Positions 4,564 through 49,015 of a stretch of DNA of 64,000 nucleotides are shown piece by piece (the first letter of the stretch is position 1; the number at the start of each line of letters is the position of its first letter). The DNA is taken from the sequence record OP123707.1. One strand, written 5' to 3'. The translations under genes were made by a program, and so were the position numbers. The notes beneath the pieces are model-generated. The model had not been told where the DNA came from and ran no database searches. It saw only the letters and a list, made by a program, of their open reading frames with translations.

Positions 4564-4665
4564 TTTTTCAATAACATGAGTATAGTCTCAGGTAATCGAT
4601 GGGACTGCTGTTGCTTAGAGGGTACACAATGAAGTAGTAGTAATATAACACAAAAGGAAACAGAC

Positions 4666-7388: not shown

Positions 7389-10300
7389 ATGGCAACTATT
7401 GTCATTAACAGTATTTTAGACGCTGACGGCAATCCAGTAACTCTGGCTGGGTCCGGGATCATCACCGGGGTACGAAGTGATGGTGAACCTGATATTACAG
7501 TAACGCCCAATCCTGATGGTACGTGGTCTTTTGACTTCACGGCTACTCAACCGGGTAACTGTGTTATTTCTTTTATGTATGGTGACGTTAAGATCACCGA
7601 ATACGTTATGAAGTTTGTCGATGATGTTACGGTCATCATTCTTCCTAGAACGACCGCTGAGGTACTTCAAGGTACTAATGGGTTAATTGCATGTCAAATC
7701 ACTGACGACGAAGGTACGGTCATTCCTAACGTCCCTGTGCAGTTCTTTGAACCAGTGCAAGGTAGTGAACCTCTAGAAACACTCACTACCAACTCACTCG
7801 GGGAAGTTGAGTGGACCGTCTCCTCCATCAATGGGGTTGGAGAAGAAAGTTTAGGTGCTCGTAATTTTGAAATTGTGGCGGCGCAACAAACGGTCGTGCA
7901 GTCAATCACGTGGATTGTGACAATACCCGAATTCGCTAAATTGAATGTGCTTTGGCACAGTAGCACCAGTGTTAACCCTGGTCAATTAACGTCTTTAGCT
8001 TCTGGAGCTTACACCAGTGGTTGGGATGGTGTCGGGGGTGTTCCTATTGAACTCTGGGACGACAACAACAATGTTAAGGTTTCAGAAGGGACAACCGATG
8101 TAGGTGGTGAGTTTTATTACGAGCGTTTTGAAGGGCAGTCTATTAATGACCCAAATCTAGCGCCTGATAAATACTCAGTGAAGGTAGGGGATGAATACAA
8201 CACCCATTGGGTTTATCGTAACATCGAATACCCTATTGCTGATACGTGGGTGGACGTAGTAGCTCCTGATGTAATACCAGCGGGCAAGACCGCTTACTTG
8301 ACAGCCAAGGCACTAGAGCGCAATGGGAACCCATCTGTTGAAGATTCAATGATGGCATGGATTGCGGGAGAGGCTACCACCGACGGTTGGTCGACTGCCT
8401 TTTATAAAGGGGAAGCGGGACTCAGACTTCCAGTACTTCCAGTGGGAACCCATAAGTTGGTTATCCATGAGTACACTTACGGCGGGGCATTCCTACCTAT
8501 CGAAGTTACGGTGTCTGATCAAGTAACACCAAGTGTTGCATCCGGTATTGTGATCGACGAAAACCACAGCACACGTTTTGCTGCGGCATCTCATAGCGTT
8601 CCTATTATTGGACACTTATTGGACGAGAACGGAGACGTCTTAAAACCGAACTGGATGTTGAACCTTAAAGCTAAAAACTTAGCTACCGGCAGCTCTTACG
8701 CGTTCAAAGTCAAACCTGATGGTACATTTGAAGTTAACGTCAGAGGAACGAACGAAGGTGCTAACAACATTGAGTTCTATGACGCAGACACAAACGTGGT
8801 CTTGGGTGAAGTTTACGCTTTTGAGGTGAAGTCGAATATGGTGGCGGAACTTTCAGCTTGCGCGACTATCCGTCCTGTTTCCGGTGAACCGGCAACACTT
8901 ATTGCTCGTGCAGTAGACTCAGGTGGCAATCCAGTTAAAGGGGCTTATGTCCAGATTAAAAATGTGGGCAACAAGTATGACGTGTACGATGAAGGGATTA
9001 CTGATGAGAATGGGTACATTGAAGTTAAGTTGTACGATTACAAACTTTATCCTTCGATGACGTTCCAAACTCGATTTAAATCCACTTATGGTGCGGTTCA
9101 AATCCCAGTTGGGTGGGCGCAGGAAGGTGAATTGACAGCTTCACAATTCACTAATCTTTCAATTCCAGAAGGTGTTCCGCCTGGAACAGAGTTTACGTTC
9201 ACTGGTAAAATAGCCGATCAAAATGGAGACCCATATCCAGGAAGTCAGGTTATTGTTCTGGATAAGAAAGAAGGTGTTGAGGTAAGTGCAACGGTTCAAG
9301 CCGATGGTACTTTCTCGGCGACACTTACCCCCACAGTAGAAGGTCCACATCCACTGGTGATTGCGGGCAATGGTGTAATTGCTCGTCATGAACTTAATGT
9401 CAGTAATCCTAAATTAGATGTACTTGATAATTCACCTACTTGGGTTGGTGCCGGGATAGATGGTAACATATACGCGGCAGTGGTTGAGAGTGATGGAACC
9501 CCAGTTCCAAATACCACCATTGACTTTTACGCCTCAACATATGACTCTTCTCCAACGCAAACTATCGTAACGGATGAGACGGGTATTGCACACTTTGTTA
9601 TTCCAGCGGAAGATCCTGTTTGGGGCGGAATCAACTTAGGGGAATATACGTATAAATTAGGGTGGGGTTCGGAAACGAAATTGTGGAGAATCACATGGCA
9701 TGAGGTGGAAGGTCCGTTGTATCAAATCTGGGAAGCACCGTACAGCACTAAACGTGGTTCGTATGGCGCAACCAGTGAGATAATTGCAGCGAGTGCGCGC
9801 TCAGCCAGTGGTTTCCCAATGCCAGGTGAAACCTTAACGTTGCACGAAAGGGATACTGATGCTTTATTGGGAACCGCAGTAACTGACCAATATGGTTATG
9901 CGGAATTCACCATCAGTTCACCGACTAGTGATCCAGAAGATCAAACTGTGAGTACTTATGAATACTACGTGTTCAAGTCAGGAGATGAAAGTATAAGTCT
10001 CGAGGTTGATTTACGCCGTGACAAATGGCTCACTACAGTTCCTGGTGGAATAGAGAATATTCAGGTCCCTACAGAGATCCCAGTAGGTAAGAAGGTTATG
10101 ATTGGTGCGGATTTACTTGATGTCTATGGTAAACCATTGCCGAATCCTGTTGGGTTCTCCACTTGGTCTAAGGAACAAGATGAGTCATTATTTGGTTTAG
10201 GAAGCGGTACCAGTGGTCTTTACAATCATGCTTTGACTTTGGTTAACACCAACAACTTACCGGTTGGGACTCACAGTCTTATTCTTTATGGTGGGTTGAG

Positions 10301-19517: not shown

Positions 19518-19618
19518 GGGTGATTTACTGGGCTCTGATATAGGGCTCAGTAATTTAAAACTAAGTTATATGTATTATATGTTACAAAAACCTTTTTCTC
19601 ACTCTTTTTTTTCCTACT

Positions 19619-19745
19619 CTAAAATGACGCTTAAAAACGCATTTTAGGGAGGGGTTTGGGGTGGGTTCTAGGTCATGGGGTGGGTTCGTAGGTCAAGTTT
19701 AGTCAAGTTGAGAAAGAGTCAAGTTGAAGAAAGTTAAGTCAAGTT
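19619..19745 (+). repeat. Intergenic repeat cluster: inverted repeat, G-tracts, 2x GGGGTGGGTTC(G)TAGGTCA and 4x GTCAAGTT
   Basis: Read directly. GTCAAGTT at 19692, 19702, 19718 and 19738; G-rich repeat units at 19658 and 19677. Confidence 0.8.
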
Positions 19746-19995
19746 TAAAAGATTTAAAAGGGAAAGAAGGTTAGAATTATTTTAATTATTTATCTAGTAA
19801 TAGTTAGCATAGCGAACGATACTCGTAGAGGAGAGTTCTAGCGGAGCTATACCAGTTTACTTATTTTTTATTTACATTTTGATTAAAGATCGTAATAACT
19901 TAAGATTAGAGTTCTTAGAAAGAGAATTCTAATGAGTAAGAGCTTATACTGCTTTTTAAATATTTATTAAACCTTAACAGAGAAAGGAAATTATC

Positions 19996-21042: not shown

Positions 21043-21690
21043 ATGGTCGAATTAAAAGACTTTTATCACCGTTTAGCTTTAGGGCGTGCTATTATTAAAA
21101 ACCCAGCCAACGTACTCGGTACGATTTTTGATCGCTGGCAATTGATTGGTCAGTCTAATTTTGAGTTTGGTGGATTAAGCTTCCATATTAACCACGTTAA
21201 ACTCAATACAGAAAACACAGGTGAGATCGCAATCATCATGAATGGGTTTCCAAACCTAGACATGCCGAGTGAAATCGCCAATGAAATGTTCTTAGAACGT
21301 GACCCGTTCCATTTTGTATTTAAACATGGTGATTTTTTCGATCGTAAAACGCTCCAGCTGACCTTCAGTGAAGAGTTATCCAAATACTTGCGTGAATATG
21401 CCGGTTACGACTTTACAACCGTACACCGTGCGTTAGGGGAAGAAGCAGCGCAACGTTTAATCACGTATTACCCGAGTAAGTTTGCTCGTTTACGCAGTCA
21501 CTTGATTCAAGACGTTCCCGTTGATAACGCATCGTTCAATGTTGTCATCGAACCTCGTGTGTTGGGTGGGAACATCCGCATGTACGGAAAGAATCGAGTT
21601 TACTTATCCCAAGCACGTGACGCGGCTTACGTCGATGTGACTTATCCGGAGTTCACGGTCAAACGTCCTCATCATAAACGTGCGGCTTAG
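21043..21690 (+). CDS. Hypothetical protein (215 aa)
   Basis: SD AGGAG, long ORF. Confidence 0.65.
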   Translation: MVELKDFYHRLALGRAIIKNPANVLGTIFDRWQLIGQSNFEFGGLSFHINHVKLNTENTGEIAIIMNGFPNLDMPSEIANEMFLERDPFHFVFKHGDFFDRKTLQLTFSEELSKYLREYAGYDFTTVHRALGEEAAQRLITYYPSKFARLRSHLIQDVPVDNASFNVVIEPRVLGGNIRMYGKNRVYLSQARDAAYVDVTYPEFTVKRPHHKRAA

Positions 21691-21699
21691 AAATATTAT

Positions 21700-21850
21700 G
21701 TGGGATTAATACAGCATTTGGAAAATCGGACGTCGATGTTCTTAGCGAAGTGACTTTCCGTTTACCATGTCATAATCCTACACCAGTAACATTAGTTAAT
21801 AAAGATGCTTAGAGGTCCTGTGCGGACTTCTAAGACATCCGAGTACTAAT
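21700..21850 (+). ncRNA. Candidate structured small RNA (two long hairpins)
   Basis: GTGGGATTA (21700) pairs with TAATCCTAC (21773-21781). Inner helix TGGAAAATCGGA/TCCGTTTACCA. Second hairpin GATG-CTTAGAGGTCC/GGACTTCTAAG-A-CATC. Starts at the G of TATG. Confidence 0.5.
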
Positions 21851-21909
21851 AACTATAAAACATTACTTTAAACTTTTAACAACGCTCAGAGTGCGTAATA
21901 GGAACTATT

Positions 21910-22638
21910 ATGTCTAAATGTAAATTTGATTTTGAATCAACCAATCTGTCCAACCGTTGTGAAGTCCGTAAACATCGTGGACAAATGGGTGAGTTGTTCT
22001 ACATCACCCGCAGTCTCATCAATGCCGAGTTTTGGTTGAGTCAGTTATTTGAACGCATGAAGCATCTGCGTGACCTTAAACTTGGAACGACTGATCCTAA
22101 GGCTCCTAATAACGCTCTGTTGATCAGTCGTGTTATTGAAGAAACGATCGGTAACAAAGCGTGCTTGGTAGTGAATGACGATCTCAACGGCGGGCATCAA
22201 GATCCTAAGTTCATTGTCAAGGTCTCCTATGACCCAGATCGCCGGACACCTTATGCGTTGCATTTCAATGCTCCGGATTATTTGTTCACCAAACCCATGG
22301 AATCCAAACCATGTGTGACCCATCGTGAGATCACGTACTATTTTAACGACCTTCCGATGTTGCGTGAGCTGGAAACCGTATTGAGTGATTACGCGAAGCA
22401 GTTCCCTTACACCGCAGATGAAGCACACGATGAATTCGTTAAGTTGGTGAAAGCTCAAAAGGAAACCCCAACCTTTAACTGGTTAGGGAAGCCAGGTCGT
22501 TACGTCAGCAACATCACAGGAACACGTCATTACAACCTGACGTATTTCACTACTCGCAAATGGATCCGTACCGATAAGCATCATGTGGAATGTTTGTTAC
22601 GCACTATGATGGGACCAACCAAGATCATTACGATTTAG
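21910..22638 (+). CDS. Hypothetical protein (242 aa)
   Basis: SD AGGA, long ORF. Confidence 0.65.
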   Translation: MSKCKFDFESTNLSNRCEVRKHRGQMGELFYITRSLINAEFWLSQLFERMKHLRDLKLGTTDPKAPNNALLISRVIEETIGNKACLVVNDDLNGGHQDPKFIVKVSYDPDRRTPYALHFNAPDYLFTKPMESKPCVTHREITYYFNDLPMLRELETVLSDYAKQFPYTADEAHDEFVKLVKAQKETPTFNWLGKPGRYVSNITGTRHYNLTYFTTRKWIRTDKHHVECLLRTMMGPTKIITI

Positions 22639-22719
22639 TAAGTTCTTAGTGGATAAGTATATTATATGTACTAAAGAACCCCGTCGAAGACCCCCTGGAA
22701 AAGGTGGAAAGGATTATTT

Positions 22720-22938
22720 TTGCATTTGAGTTATAGAGTACTCCTTAGAGTGAACTATGAGGTACGAGTAGTGAACGGTGAGTGTTGTAGTACGCAGTAC
22801 GAAGACACGATAAAAAAGGGTACTCTTATAACGTTATGGGGTAAAGGTAAGATCCGAGTAAAGCAATTATGGATCTATATTACTGACACGATAAAGGAAT
22901 ACTGTGTGGGATTAATTATAGGTTTAACAGGAGTATAA
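22720..22938 (+). CDS. Possible small protein (72 aa, TTG start)
   Basis: SD AAGGA 6 nt upstream of TTG; fills the intergenic gap. Could instead be regulatory DNA. Confidence 0.3.
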   Translation: MHLSYRVLLRVNYEVRVVNGECCSTQYEDTIKKGTLITLWGKGKIRVKQLWIYITDTIKEYCVGLIIGLTGV

Positions 22939-22942
22939 CGGA

Positions 22943-23713
22943 ATGAGTACAGTGATTCAACAGATCAGCAACACCAATTTATACCACGTACACGGCACCG
23001 TCGTGACAGCCAAAGGAAGACCGAATCGTCAGAACAACATCATGATGACCATTAAGGGTCAAAAACAAGTTCGACTAACTCGTGGACAACGTTGGGTGAA
23101 ACAGCTAGCGAAACTAAGAGAAGGGTTCCCTTTACACTTAGTGGATCAATCTGAACACCTGTGTTTCAAAGAGATCGTGCTTCCTACTTACGAAGATTAC
23201 GTTGTTGATGCACCGTACTTAAGCTGTATGTTGGAATGGGAAGGCTTGCAACTTTACGTATTGCCGGGGTTCTTAGGTAACGCGGTTAGCAGCCAGGGGA
23301 AAGTTTACGAGCTTTACTTAGATAAAGCCAACAAGGAATGGTACTGGGGAGAGATCTACCCTAACCAAAACGAATGTTACGATTTGATCAACTCCATTGA
23401 TGGGGATATGTTGGAGTTAAGCGCGGAAGATCTGATTTACTTACTCAAAGGCGATTACGTCGATGGGAAGGACATCAGTGCTTACTACGAAAAGCGTCAC
23501 ACGGATCTAAAAGCAAAGCTGGCACTCGATGATGGCTGGGTTTCCGTGGATCCTAAGAGTGACTTCGGTCCAGAACATGTGGCTCAACTCCATAACGACA
23601 ATGTGGTGGTTACGTTACGTGACAAACCTAAGACCGTCACAGAAGCGTTCCTACAAGCATACCACGCCAGTGGTTGTGAAACTCAACCTTGGTTAAGTCG
23701 CATTGCAGTTTAA
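22943..23713 (+). CDS. Hypothetical protein with a NUMOD4-like segment
   Basis: LPGFLGNAVSSQGKVY resembles the NUMOD4 pattern IPGY.GYEVS.LGRV. Confidence 0.55.
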   Translation: MSTVIQQISNTNLYHVHGTVVTAKGRPNRQNNIMMTIKGQKQVRLTRGQRWVKQLAKLREGFPLHLVDQSEHLCFKEIVLPTYEDYVVDAPYLSCMLEWEGLQLYVLPGFLGNAVSSQGKVYELYLDKANKEWYWGEIYPNQNECYDLINSIDGDMLELSAEDLIYLLKGDYVDGKDISAYYEKRHTDLKAKLALDDGWVSVDPKSDFGPEHVAQLHNDNVVVTLRDKPKTVTEAFLQAYHASGCETQPWLSRIAV

Positions 23714-23799
23714 GAAGCCCCCAACTACTCTACTTGCTTAATAGCGGTAGAGTAGAGTCTCTTTTTTATTTTTCAATTTTTTATTTAAGGATGAACATC

Positions 23800-24936
23800 A
23801 TGTCCATAGCACTACCATTGAGCAATGATCCAATCGTCACCAAAGCGATGAACCTCATCAGTCGTGATTATTTAAAGCTGCCATTGAGTTCTAACTTAGC
23901 GGAACGCATGGGCTTGAAACCAAATCAATTACGTCATCGTTTTGCTAATGATGGATTAGAGACCCCAAAACACTATTTAGGGAAAGTTAGGGTCGCTTAT
24001 GTAAGGAACCAACTGAAATCCACCAATCGATCCATTCAAGAGATCGCTCAGTCGATGGGGTATGAAGAAGAACATCAATTCCGCAATTGGTACCGAAGCA
24101 ACACCGGGATCACACCAATCAAAGAACGGACCTTAGCACAACTGGAGTCGGAGAACATAGAGACACGCCCAGAGCAAATGGACACCATCATTGATGAACT
24201 CAAAGCCCATATCGATGCCAACTTCACCACCTTAACTCAGGTGGAGTCTTTTATGGATCAATACCTGATGAGCAACGTAGCGATACGCCGTTCATTTAAA
24301 CGAACTCATAAACTGTACCCACGCGAGTATTTGATCAAAACTCAGTGTGAGTATGTTGCGAGGCGCATTCGTAAGGATGGTTGGTTTAAACAAGAAATCT
24401 TGAAACACGTGAAACATGGACAGATTACCGGGTTCAATCGCATGTTCAAGAAATACTACAACGTGAGTGTGTACGACTACGGTAAAACAAACACCTTGGG
24501 ATTCGCAGTGACCGTCAACGGAACCAAACGTTGGTTGACGCAAACTTTAGTGGACCAGATTTTAGAACACCTGGCGGACGAAGTCTTTACGGATCATCAA
24601 TCGATCACTGACATTCGAAAGTTTTACGGTATTCATTATGAGAACTGGACTAAGTTGTTTGAAAGTACCGTCGGTATGAATGCACGACACACTTATCGTG
24701 GGATCGAGTATGAAGCAGCACTTCACTTGATCCAACACACGAGTTGGAACATCGAACGCATTATCGACACCGTGACGTCTGGTAAGCGTTCCAACTTTAA
24801 CGCCCGTTTTAAAGAGTACTTCGGATTGACGCCAATCGAAGCCAGACGCTACCCAGAACGTGTGATGCGTTTACAGGACACTGAGCAATTGGTGAAGTAC
24901 ATGAAAGTTGGCTTACAAAACTTAGAAATTAATTAA
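23800..24936 (+). CDS. Protein of three tandem AraC/XylS-type DNA-binding domains (378 aa)
   Basis: Three ~100-aa units ending FRNWYRSNTGITP, FNRMFKKYYNVSV and FNARFKEYFGLTP. SD AAGGA before ATG 23800. Confidence 0.85.
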   Translation: MSIALPLSNDPIVTKAMNLISRDYLKLPLSSNLAERMGLKPNQLRHRFANDGLETPKHYLGKVRVAYVRNQLKSTNRSIQEIAQSMGYEEEHQFRNWYRSNTGITPIKERTLAQLESENIETRPEQMDTIIDELKAHIDANFTTLTQVESFMDQYLMSNVAIRRSFKRTHKLYPREYLIKTQCEYVARRIRKDGWFKQEILKHVKHGQITGFNRMFKKYYNVSVYDYGKTNTLGFAVTVNGTKRWLTQTLVDQILEHLADEVFTDHQSITDIRKFYGIHYENWTKLFESTVGMNARHTYRGIEYEAALHLIQHTSWNIERIIDTVTSGKRSNFNARFKEYFGLTPIEARRYPERVMRLQDTEQLVKYMKVGLQNLEIN

Positions 24937-24949
24937 AGGCTTAAGAACA

Positions 24950-25666
24950 ATGCAACAAGATTTTAAACAATCACTTTTAGAAAGCACCGTCCAGTGGGTC
25001 CACAACAACTACCATCGACCAATTAAGGTAGGGGACATCCACCACCAAATGGGGTTGTCTGCTCCTCTGGTCACATATTTGTTTAAAGCACGTTTCAAGA
25101 TCACCCCAGGAACGTACCTCCGTAACTACCGAATGATGAAGGCTCACGAACACATTCGCCAAGGGGTTAAACCTACGGTGGCGTGTGAACGTACTGGGTA
25201 CACCAGTTACCACGCGTTTTGTCGAGTGTACAAAGTCCATTACGGGTTAACCCCATCGGAACATTCTCGACGTTTCCGTAACATGGAAGTCCAGACGGAA
25301 AGCTACGCTAACAGCATCATGAACAAGGAGTTCCCGGAAAGCCTTCGTGCTCGCATCATTGATTACGTGGTTGAGAACATCAAGCACAACCAAAACTTAC
25401 GTAAGTTGGAGAAACACTTCAATCTTCGGTTTGGGAGTTTGGGTCCTATGTTCGAGTATTTTTATAACTTGACATATTACGATTGGCGCAAGAAGATGCG
25501 CATGGAGAAGGTCAATGAGTTAATCCGTAACGACCCTCACATGGATCTTAAATCACTCCCAGCGACGTTAGGGATTTGCAGTTATCACTATCTAAACACG
25601 TTGTACCAAGCACACTACGGTATGACGATTGGTCAGTACGCTTACAAACAAAAGAGAATGGTCTAA
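24950..25666 (+). CDS. Protein of two tandem AraC-type DNA-binding domains (238 aa)
   Basis: Units ...YLRNYRM...TGYTSYHAFCRVYKVHYGLTPSE and ...KMRMEK...LGICSYHYLNTLYQAHYGMT. Confidence 0.85.
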   Translation: MQQDFKQSLLESTVQWVHNNYHRPIKVGDIHHQMGLSAPLVTYLFKARFKITPGTYLRNYRMMKAHEHIRQGVKPTVACERTGYTSYHAFCRVYKVHYGLTPSEHSRRFRNMEVQTESYANSIMNKEFPESLRARIIDYVVENIKHNQNLRKLEKHFNLRFGSLGPMFEYFYNLTYYDWRKKMRMEKVNELIRNDPHMDLKSLPATLGICSYHYLNTLYQAHYGMTIGQYAYKQKRMV

Positions 25667-26370
25667 TGAAAAACATGGAAGTTTTTAAGTTCATCGAACA
25701 AGCGATCGAAGCAAATTATCGTGATCTAAAGGCAAGTGGGAAAGTCTGTCAGGCCACCGCAATGAGTCGTAACCAGATTAATGCGGTGTTAGCACGTCTA
25801 GGAAAGCCGACCCTGAAACAACTGATCGTAAATAAGCGCGTGATCGTTGCTAAGGAGCTCCTAGACAAAGGAACGGTGAAAGCCAAAGTCTTACACACCA
25901 AAGTAGGATACGGTACGTACAAAGGGCTTAGAGAGGCGTTTGTGCAAGCTTACGGAGTTACCCCAAGTTTTTATGAGATGAGTCCTAAGACTAAGCTCCA
26001 GAATAAAAACGAAAAGCAAACTCCTCCGGAGTTCACCCAACCGTTTCAGTATGAAGTCAATAAGTACATTCTGAAACATTTCGTGGATAAGGGGATTACT
26101 GTTCATGATGTGGCGAAGGAATTCAACACCACCAACGAGATGATTGAGAAAGTGTGTCAACACTATTACCATCGATCATTTGCGGACCGGGTATTACACC
26201 TTCGTTTGAACCGTGCCGCGGGTCAATTACACGGAACCCGCAAAGACCCAAAAACCATCGCTTCGAATGTTGGGTTTCTAACCTACCATTTCTTTGTAGT
26301 GAAATTCACGGAGATGTTTACGGTAGGACCTAAACGTTACCGGACCTTAGCTCGACTGAATGCGATTTAA
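25666..26370 (+). CDS. Protein of two tandem AraC-type DNA-binding domains (234 aa)
   Basis: TAATG overlap with the previous gene. Units ...VGYGTYKGLREAFVQAYGVTP and ...LRLNRA...VGFLTYHFFVVKFTEMFTVGPKRYR. Confidence 0.85.
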   Translation: MKNMEVFKFIEQAIEANYRDLKASGKVCQATAMSRNQINAVLARLGKPTLKQLIVNKRVIVAKELLDKGTVKAKVLHTKVGYGTYKGLREAFVQAYGVTPSFYEMSPKTKLQNKNEKQTPPEFTQPFQYEVNKYILKHFVDKGITVHDVAKEFNTTNEMIEKVCQHYYHRSFADRVLHLRLNRAAGQLHGTRKDPKTIASNVGFLTYHFFVVKFTEMFTVGPKRYRTLARLNAI

Positions 26371-26389
26371 TACTGAAAGGTAATGTTAT

Positions 26390-26907
26390 GTGAACAGAAA
26401 GTATTTTAGTGAAACCTCACTGGAGTATCCGAACAAATCAGGTGTATACCGCGAGATCTGTCAGTAGTGTGGATCTTCAAGTACTTCTGTTCACAATCTC
26501 ATCCTTTCACGGGGTGATACCAGATCAGTAGGTATAAAGCGCACGAATAATGTTCGGGGATGGCAATGGTTTGATTTTCATCCTTTTGTTTCCGGCTTCG
26601 ATGAGTAGCCGTTCCCGGACACCAAATGTTAATTCATGTATGTTGACGCATTGGTATCATGAGTTACATTAGACCCTTCTTCATTTAGCCGAGTGGATGA
26701 ACGGGTTGCTGTGTGAACAGCCGGCTAAGCTCTTTAAGACGAATAAGGTTCCTCCAGCCTTGCCCATCGTTTCCCTCATTAGAGAGTTTAGTTCGGGTGT
26801 TTCTTCCAGTAGGGAAGGCCAACCACTGCTTTCTTGGTGACATCTTTAGTTCTTAGGAACAAGATAGTTTCGCAGCAGCCGTTCTCCTAGGAGAACGGTA
26901 CTTTTTT
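26390..26907 (+). ncRNA. Candidate large structured non-coding RNA (~520 nt), family not recognised
   Basis: No credible ORF in a gene-dense genome. More than 12 helices found by eye, a terminal helix GTGAACAGAAAGTA/TACTTCTGTTCAC, a GNRA hairpin and a pseudoknot. Starts at the G of TATG and ends in a terminator. Confidence 0.7.
26878..26907 (+). terminator. Intrinsic terminator closing the candidate ncRNA
   Basis: GCCGTTCTC-ctag-GAGAACGGT then ACTTTTTT. Confidence 0.85.
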
Positions 26908-27051
26908 GCTTTTTCAATATTTTCATAAAAAAGTTCCAGAGCTCCTACAAGGCTCTCTAAGCTTCTTTAGCACTTTTATTATGTCTTATAAACTATAACT
27001 GCATTGCACATCTTCTAGGTGCCATACAAACGTTTTAACGATGGAAAGTTT

Positions 27052-27345
27052 ATGTCTAAAATCAAATTATCTTTGGTCGCGATTTGTTTATCCGACTTCG
27101 AGGACGTATTACCAAGCAGCGGTCAGGCAACGCAAGCCATAGGTTTGATTCAAGAAGCCCTTATCGACCTTGGTTATAACGTTCAACATGTGCATCAGGT
27201 GCAGGGGGACCCAACGACACTGTATCCTGTTCGCGCATATATCAAAAATGTCATTGTGGGGCAATCCAACGGAATACCAACGGACTCTAACGTCACTATC
27301 CGTATTGCCAACGCACAGTGTTACTCAGTCCTATTTTTTAAATAG
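27052..27345 (+). CDS. Hypothetical protein
   Basis: SD GGAAAG; first gene of a tightly coupled cluster. Confidence 0.55.
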   Translation: MSKIKLSLVAICLSDFEDVLPSSGQATQAIGLIQEALIDLGYNVQHVHQVQGDPTTLYPVRAYIKNVIVGQSNGIPTDSNVTIRIANAQCYSVLFFK

Positions 27346-48990: not shown

Positions 48991-49015
48991 TTTTGAGTCT
49001 ATATTACTAGAGTGT
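48991..49015 (+). promoter_or_regulatory. Phage early-promoter-like motif, copy 5
   Basis: TTTTGAGTCTATATTACTAGAGTGT, containing TATATTAC. Confidence 0.6.

Follow-up and report, generated by a model that had tools for sequence, protein, structure and literature searches.

This analysis concerns positions 21,700 to 26,907 of a 64,000-nucleotide (nt) window, the whole stretch of DNA that was analysed, taken from sequence record OP123707.1, and in particular a run of three AraC-type genes (AraC1 to AraC3) that is followed by a large structured noncoding RNA at 26390..26907 (the large RNA). The region shares 100% identity with Vibrio phage phiKT1028 (OP123707.1, 238.8 kilobases (kb); Gorgonvirinae, Tidunavirus), which bears out the phage origin proposed in an earlier note made from the window's letters. 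Also known as 'Ariel', phiKT1028 is a nucleus-forming chimallivirus without the tubulin PhuZ, a protein encoded by its relatives Aphrodite1 and phiKT1019 (PMC10587174, PMC11724907). The deposited phiKT1028 annotation of the region comprises five hypothetical proteins and two AraC-like regulators, leaving 26371-27051 unannotated. Comparison with the isolates phiKT1019, pTD1, VP4B, Aphrodite1, USC-1, PDCC-1 and 2 TSL-2019, and with further copies from three Logan assemblies (L130, L137 and the distant L135/L136), shows the region to be a gene block that Gorgonvirinae chimalliviruses conserve. The distant copy, L135/L136, is a chimallivirus contig with chimallin, a divergent DNA polymerase and a PhuZ-like tubulin. 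All features described below lie on the + strand unless stated otherwise.

The large RNA measures 518 nt, from the G of a TATG motif to the U-run of a terminator. In every Gorgonvirinae isolate examined, the gap after the last AraC gene is unannotated and 498-941 nt long, and homologues of the RNA, 337-572 nt in length, occur in 11 other genomes or contigs, giving a total of 12 sequences from approximately seven lineages. Overall identity between the window copy and its homologues is only 50-58%, the alignment being made up of invariant islands (GAACA...GGUGUAUACCGC, GUAUAAAGCGCA, AGCCGGCU, AGUUCGG, CACUGC and the terminator) with length-variable segments between them. The 337-nt RNA of the distant relative L135 retains the TATG, a helix termed F-G and the terminator; the blocks of the 5' domain and its closing helix P1 are lacking, and R1, a model of the 5' domain, fails to find this copy. 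F-G is the sole internal part retained in L135, while the 5'-domain blocks are not, and the F-G region can therefore be regarded as the core of the family.

Several lines of evidence indicate that this sequence folds. The window copy has a minimum free energy (MFE) z-score of -5.3, and the distant homologue one of -6.25. The 5' domain (26390..26494), which contains the conserved block GAACA...GGUGUAUACCGC at 26431-26452, is closed by P1 (26390-26399 / 26485-26494), a helix of 10 base pairs (bp), GUGAACAGAA/UUCUGUUCAC, opening at G26390. P1 has been rebuilt with different sequences in five lineages, and in an alignment fitted to a model its cells are paired in 97.5% of cases, six of its nine pairs having changed on both sides. 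In the core helix F-G (26722..26795; strands 26722-26735 / 26781-26795), AGCCGGCU... pairs with ...AGUUCGG over 13 bp; all 139 cells of these 13 pairs are paired (100%, 11 sequences), compared with 20-58% in slid controls, and the base of the helix is invariant (C-G, G-C, G.U, a bulged U, C-G, U-A). The 3' end is an intrinsic terminator (26878..26907), a G+C-rich hairpin with a 9-bp stem and a 4-nt loop followed by a U6 run (26902-26907), whose stem covaries across relatives while the U6 run is invariant.

For P1, F-G and the terminator alike, none of 500 shuffles reached the observed pairing or covariation score, the P1 test referring to the whole 17-pair structure and not to P1 alone, and sliding the partner by 1-3 columns lowered pairing to 20-59%; these shuffle controls ignore the relatedness of the sequences. 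Within two clades, RNAalifold placed compensatory changes in 25 of 94 and 20 of 125 predicted pairs. The strand can be assigned as +, because the invariant G.U pairs and the U-run fit that strand only. The structured RNA that the earlier note had proposed at the 3' end of the AraC genes is thus borne out by its fold energy, its compensatory changes and its retention in all relatives. A long-range helix between the GUAUAAAGCGCA and CACUGC blocks was considered and rejected, as its registers vary between lineages when judged by eye.

A coding explanation was likewise rejected, since no open reading frame (ORF) is conserved within the large RNA, by position or by sequence, across nine homologues. 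Rfam 15 (4227 models, among them RNase P, tmRNA, 6S, GOLLD, ROOL, OLE, group I/II introns and riboswitches) gave no match in the whole window at the gathering threshold. At E <= 10, only chance-level matches appeared between 21000 and 27600, none of them inside the large RNA, and a search of 26380-26915 alone (536 nt) returned nothing. ARAGORN predicted no tRNA or tmRNA gene in the window, the F-G pattern retrieved known isolates only from IMG/VR, and no published description of the large RNA was found in the literature. We consider it very probable that the large RNA is a real and previously undescribed structured RNA. It constitutes a new family of a kind already known, that of phage-borne large structured RNAs such as GOLLD and ROOL, with a new setting and a narrow distribution. 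Like GOLLD, ROOL and OLE, it is a large, multi-helix, covarying noncoding RNA whose function is unassigned, and GOLLD and ROOL are often phage-borne too; it differs from them in the lack of any covariance-model match, in being carried by Vibrio jumbo phages and not by Firmicutes and their phages, and in a far narrower distribution of about seven lineages.

Its size and ornate fold, which resemble those of phage-associated large RNAs (PMC12286853), are also one of two arguments for a ribozyme or a self-assembling RNA of the ROOL/GOLLD type; the absence of any RNase P, ROOL or GOLLD model match on the RNA alone speaks against both versions. The other argument concerns RNase P and a P4-like helix. 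Part of E. coli rnpB, GGUAAGAGCGCAC, looks like the block GGUAUAAAGCGCAC. The helix CCGGCU / AG[U]UCGG (26722-26727 / 26790-26795), invariant in 11 sequences and better conserved than any other part of the large RNA, is similar to the P4 helix of bacterial RNase P, with both strands the same bar one C-to-U change and a bulged U at the equivalent place. A 6-nt match of this sort is expected by chance and is provisionally treated here as a coincidence. In the large RNA the two strands stand in the opposite order and form a simple local hairpin, conservation of the flanking 'ACAG' does not extend to the whole family and no other conserved region of RNase P rises above chance. Smith-Waterman scores against E. 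coli rnpB were 16-18, at or below the shuffle mean of 18, and homology to RNase P was rejected. Catalysis or self-assembly as the main role of the large RNA is, in our judgement, highly improbable.

The putative 5' boundary of the RNA follows from its relation to the TATG motif. The stop codon of AraC3 (TAA, 26368-26370) is followed by TATG at 26387-26390, and G26390 is the first base of P1. The earlier note had described this arrangement both here and at a second site upstream of the AraC genes, and it was recovered at each: upstream, the stop codon TAG (21688-21690) precedes TATG at 21697-21700, and G21700 opens a 9-bp helix. Late promoters of phiKZ, the founding chimallivirus, are used by the non-virion RNA polymerase and have the consensus 5'-TATG-3', all four bases of which are needed and the G of which is the transcription start (PMC4666361, PMC7598289). 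Judged by sequence only, positions 26387-26390 have the form of such a phiKZ-type late promoter. The TATG of the large RNA fits the chimallivirus rule as a putative promoter core for the non-virion RNA polymerase, with G26390 as the proposed +1; under that rule, a G standing as first base of the terminal helix is the look expected of a transcript that begins at +1. TATG precedes the large RNA in all 12 homologues, those of L130, L137 and L135 included, and in eight relatives 'ATnnTATGT' is invariant within a spacer that is otherwise variable, the motif being present in the three further homologues as well. This conservation would be a stronger argument for a promoter than the motif alone. In the window, the extended form [AT]T[AT]TATG is enriched intergenically (9/14, p = 6e-7).

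It was also observed that three TATG sites coincide with tiny start-stop ORFs: 21698-21709 (ATG TGG GAT TAA), 22666-22674 (ATG TAC TAA) and 26388-26393 (ATG TGA). A tiny ORF (ATG TGA or ATG TAA) is present at the large-RNA site in most relatives too, and a Shine-Dalgarno-like AAGG lies upstream of it in phiKT1028 only.

The spacer between AraC3 and the large RNA is short (17-29 nt across the relatives, 19 nt in phiKT1028). The earlier note had seen no terminator in it, and none was found either in these 19 nt or in the corresponding spacer of any relative, so that early transcripts should run into the large RNA and end at its terminator, the only strong one of the block. On this basis, the large RNA could be the 3' untranslated region (UTR) or the processed 3' end of the AraC operon mRNA, without a promoter of its own, acting as a stabiliser or as a 3'-derived RNA. 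The invariance of 'ATnnTATGT' in a variable spacer argues against it, as does the position of P1, whose first base is exactly the G of TATG in the ten sequences that R1 matches, whereas L135 has the TATG but no P1; and a complex fold of 340-570 nt far exceeds what mRNA stabilisation needs. We give this explanation little credence.

The 3' side of the RNA raises a different question. In Aphroditevirus, phiKT1019 and L135, a tubulin gene lies between the RNA terminator and the homologue of an ORF of 97 amino acids (aa) located at 27052-27345 in phiKT1028; in L135/L136 the order is a single triple-domain AraC gene, TATG, the 337-nt RNA, the terminator and, 31 nt further on, phuZ. The interval 26908-27051 is the exact site of the missing phuZ, and genomes without that gene still conserve the AT-rich sequence (TTTTTTGCnTTT..A.TATTTT) that directly follows the terminator. 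Given this neighbourhood, the large RNA might be a cis-acting leader or attenuator, that is, a long structured 5' UTR whose terminator gates read-through into the downstream gene. In Tidunavirus that gene would be the 97-aa ORF; in Aphroditevirus, in phiKT1019 and in the distant relative it would be phuZ. In the PhuZ-encoding relatives phuZ begins about 40 nt after the terminator, with neither TATG nor TATATTAC, a phiKZ promoter motif, between the two. Premature termination in 5' UTRs is known to yield RNAs in two chimalliviruses, 201phi2-1 and phiKZ (PMC11512511). These published chimallivirus noncoding RNAs are shorter than 250 nt (PMC11512511), whereas the large RNA has 340-570 nt, is multidomain and persists after loss of the downstream gene. 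In four Tidunavirus lineages without phuZ both the RNA and its covarying helices are still present, which argues that the large RNA is independent of the downstream gene. A leader is further disfavoured because the terminator is strong, with U6 after a G+C-rich stem of 9-10 bp, and because no match to a known riboswitch or leader family was obtained. A riboswitch-style anti-terminator was examined and rejected, as the best partner of the terminator 5' arm falls at inconsistent positions across lineages and none is conserved. Overall, we regard a leader or attenuator as unlikely, though as the foremost of the alternatives.

The genes upstream of the large RNA encode an unusual set of regulators. 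AraC1 (23800..24936, 378 aa, phrog_7620) has three AraC-type DNA-binding domains (HTH_18, E = 7.7e-32), and AraC2 (24950..25666, 238 aa) and AraC3 (25666..26370, 234 aa) have two each, the ATG of AraC3 overlapping the stop codon of AraC2. In Pfam these correspond to 3, 2 and 2 HTH_18 stretches with scores of 109.9, 77.3 and 72.6 bits against a cut-off of 33.6, in agreement with the multi-HTH array that the earlier note had recognised. Pfam detects no domain other than HTH_18 in the three proteins; the chains amount to 117-126 residues for each HTH_18 stretch, which leaves no space for a sensor or dimerisation domain, and the N-terminal ligand-binding/dimerisation domain of classical two-domain AraC/XylS regulators is missing. 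The closest solved relatives are sensor-less as well, residues 7-108 of AraC2 matching SoxS, RamA and MarA chains in PDB. Like MarA, SoxS, Rob and RamA, the phage proteins consist only of AraC-type two-helix-turn-helix DNA-binding domains; they differ in fusing two or three such domains in tandem and in being encoded by three genes in a row.

Orthologues of these proteins diverge to 27-50% identity, only fold-typical residues being invariant. Among 50,697 phage records, full-length relatives of AraC1 were found only in Gorgonvirinae; among 1.84 billion representative proteins, only about seven clusters contain full-length relatives of the triple arrays; and a search of viral contigs with AraC3 retrieved no further homologue. 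The part of phrog_7620 to which AraC2 and AraC3 align is also the one matched by the last two-thirds (the last two domains) of AraC1, and L135 has a single triple-domain gene (L135:10001-11101) where the Gorgonvirinae isolates have three, which suggests that AraC2 and AraC3 may have arisen by tandem duplication.

ORF256 (22943..23713), a conserved hypothetical protein gene (phrog_24322) for whose profile no match was found in metagenome contigs, precedes AraC1. Approximately 60 nt upstream of it lies CTATATTACT (22875..22884), a motif of the phiKZ early, virion-RNA-polymerase type that the earlier note had not picked up, which is invariant in eight relatives and kept in L135 at 8982-8991. The underlying TATATTAC is a listed phiKZ promoter that has been recognised bioinformatically upstream of early operons (PMC7058600, PMC7598289), and its position upstream of the operon, at 22876, agrees with that usage as far as the letters alone can tell. 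The 64-kb window contains just three copies of TATATTAC, at 22875-22884 (+), 48999-49008 (+) and approximately 4640-4647 (-). The copy at 48999 precedes a 700-aa ORF by about 40 nt, and after it comes AGAGTGTGAAC, which resembles AGAGTGAAC of a conserved noncoding element described below. Between ORF256 and AraC1 there is a hairpin with a U-run (23725..23767; 9-bp stem, 13-nt loop); a hairpin with a U-rich tail occurs there in every genome, the sequences differing, and no recognisable promoter was found in this gap in any genome. From the promoter motif, ORF256 and the AraC genes would form an early transcription unit. AraC/MarA-type domains are binders of double-stranded DNA, and the arrays are most plausibly early regulators that bind double-stranded DNA of host or phage targets.

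Whether the AraC arrays and the large RNA work together was the central proposal of the earlier note, which imagined a module in which multi-HTH proteins control the RNA or are sequestered by it. Their co-occurrence stood: the two are adjacent in 12 of 12 sequences, every genome with one of them also having the other (a count that leaves out three AraC1-like protein clusters, P0003, P0004 and P0006, which were not traced to DNA). The adjacency survives a change in the number of AraC genes, from three to the single gene of the distant relative, and in the downstream neighbour, phuZ or the 97-aa ORF. It is not independent evidence for a functional link, because all 12 sequences share the same gene order and adjacency in collinear genomes is inherited. 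An early motif before the AraC genes and a late-type TATG before the RNA suggest that the two may belong to different temporal classes, an arrangement that would fit a timed switch in which late RNA titrates early AraC proteins; alternatively, the AraC proteins might control transcription of the RNA. The missing terminator between AraC3 and the RNA also favours a module of either sort. Weighing against it are the apparent difference in promoter class between the two parts, the double-stranded-DNA preference known for AraC/MarA domains, the divergence of the AraC orthologues down to 27-30% identity set against an invariant RNA core, and the mere 19 nt of DNA available upstream of TATG for an operator. 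We therefore judge a functional module improbable. Its most specific version, in which the late RNA is a decoy or scaffold that captures the early tandem AraC proteins and so provides a temporal off-switch once the phage polymerase turns on, is a long shot. If true, a nucleus-forming phage would contain an RNA that mimics DNA for transcription factors. The DNA-mimicking, protein-sequestering 6S RNA serves only as a working analogy for such titration, since it shares no sequence or structural similarity with the large RNA and its Rfam model does not match.

A second conserved noncoding element, overlooked in the earlier note, lies upstream of ORF256. The gap (22639-22942) between ORF256 and ORF242 (21910..22638, a conserved hypothetical protein gene, phrog_20775) is the best-conserved DNA of the region: positions 22655-22815 show 86-88% identity to all relatives, across genera, compared with 49-57% for ORF242, 63-68% for ORF256 and 51-60% for AraC1. 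The element itself (22655..22826) opens with the AT-rich TATATTATATG, which includes TATG at 22665-22668 with its G at 22668, continues with a terminator-like hairpin and U-run at approximately 22690-22722, and ends in a 92-nt domain with a closing helix (22735-22746 / 22816-22826). Single-base indels mark it as noncoding, and in one clade the closing helix has an inserted base on both strands (judged by eye). In VP4B the domain core is present a second time, as a shorter copy (L128:9690-9757) with a different closing helix of its own; the copy precedes, by 54 nt, a 284-aa ORF which has one weak motif in common with ORF256 (E = 0.016). The phiKT1028 record holds a second match to the element outside the window. 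The element is absent from the distant relative L135. A 20-mer taken from it had no match in metagenome contigs and matched known isolates only in IMG/VR, while an 18-mer searched against 185,579 bacterial genomes gave one chance match. In Gorgonvirinae proper, ORF256 and the AraC genes are therefore flanked by two conserved noncoding elements, this middle element and the large RNA.

This differs from the pair of RNAs by which the earlier note had seen the AraC genes bracketed, the upstream member of which was the 87-nt hairpin-closed candidate small RNA at 21700-21786 (21697..21786 with its TATG). Its 9-bp helix, GUGGGAUUA/UAAUCCUAC, closes a fold of -23.6 kcal/mol that stands out from shuffles only marginally, with a z-score of -2.5 and 3 of 200 shuffles folding as well. 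The candidate is specific to phiKT1028: it has no homologue in the 50,697 phage records besides its own genome and is missing at the syntenic site in eight of eight relatives, where the upstream gene is followed directly by a palindromic hairpin. The equivalent in phiKT1028 is the G+C-rich palindromic hairpin upstream of ORF242 (21804..21839), which is terminator-like, lacks a U-run and recurs with different sequence at the same position in all relatives. A relationship between the small hairpin and the large RNA was rejected, since R1 detects a single copy in each genome and does not match the small hairpin. The earlier reading of this element as a structured RNA is consequently not supported, and because it is an orphan hairpin, the bracketing is not conserved. 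It may be a lineage-specific small RNA, for which its helix and its TATG are the only arguments.

In the wider window, where most genes lie on the + strand, cumulative GC skew (1-64000) has a broad maximum at approximately 24-27 kb, around the AraC/RNA block, and then falls. A 478-nt intergenic gap at 19518-19995, just past an HNH endonuclease gene, lies in the kilobase of lowest G+C (0.385) and contains two overlapping TATATG motifs, at 19572 and 19581.

Taken as a whole, the locus is best explained by a structured RNA gene that stands alone, that the phage polymerase would transcribe from TATG and whose folded product would bind a partner, a reading that we hold with modest confidence, slightly above an even chance. 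The early promoter motif TATATTAC would drive ORF256 and the AraC genes, and the large RNA would be a separate gene directly after the last of these, on which the non-virion RNA polymerase, by analogy with phiKZ, would start at the G of TATG. The product may act on its own as a folded RNA, in which the invariant core helix, with its G.U wobble and bulged U, and the conserved unpaired blocks could form a platform for a conserved partner. As no terminator intervenes, read-through from the AraC operon could also place the large RNA in the operon's 3' end. The alternatives discussed above rank in the order leader or attenuator, AraC partner, 3' end of the AraC operon, and ribozyme or self-assembling RNA.

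Several points weigh against the stand-alone RNA gene. We infer the start, the end and the independence of its transcript, and its partner is a postulate. TATG carries little information, and the bare motif is not enriched intergenically (20/217 on the + strand, in a window of which 9% is intergenic). The gap of about 40 nt without a recognisable promoter between terminator and phuZ means that, in PhuZ-encoding relatives, the large RNA could be a leader. The family is small, with approximately seven lineages, all related, so the shuffle controls overstate significance, and the central ~200 nt have no agreed consensus structure. Among known systems, the large RNA comes closest to phiKZ-type late units and to the 5'-UTR-derived RNAs of phiKZ and 201phi2-1, with which it shares membership of Chimalliviridae, a TATG whose G would be transcribed first, and a proposed start followed by an intrinsic terminator that gives a noncoding product.

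A 2026 review states only that phiKZ expresses noncoding RNAs (PMC13282480). The present locus marks the exact place where Tidunaviruses lost PhuZ, and its seven AraC domains, all sensor-less, form an unusual set that is probably expressed early. It also provides three candidate promoter-proximal elements with which the promoter rules of phage polymerases may be approached outside Pseudomonas phages. Nucleus-forming jumbo phages separate transcription from translation, and the RNAs described in them to date are short and come from 5' UTRs. The large RNA raises the questions of whether it stays in the phage nucleus and what binds it there or elsewhere. If it is a stand-alone RNA, it would be the first large structured RNA class in Chimalliviridae.

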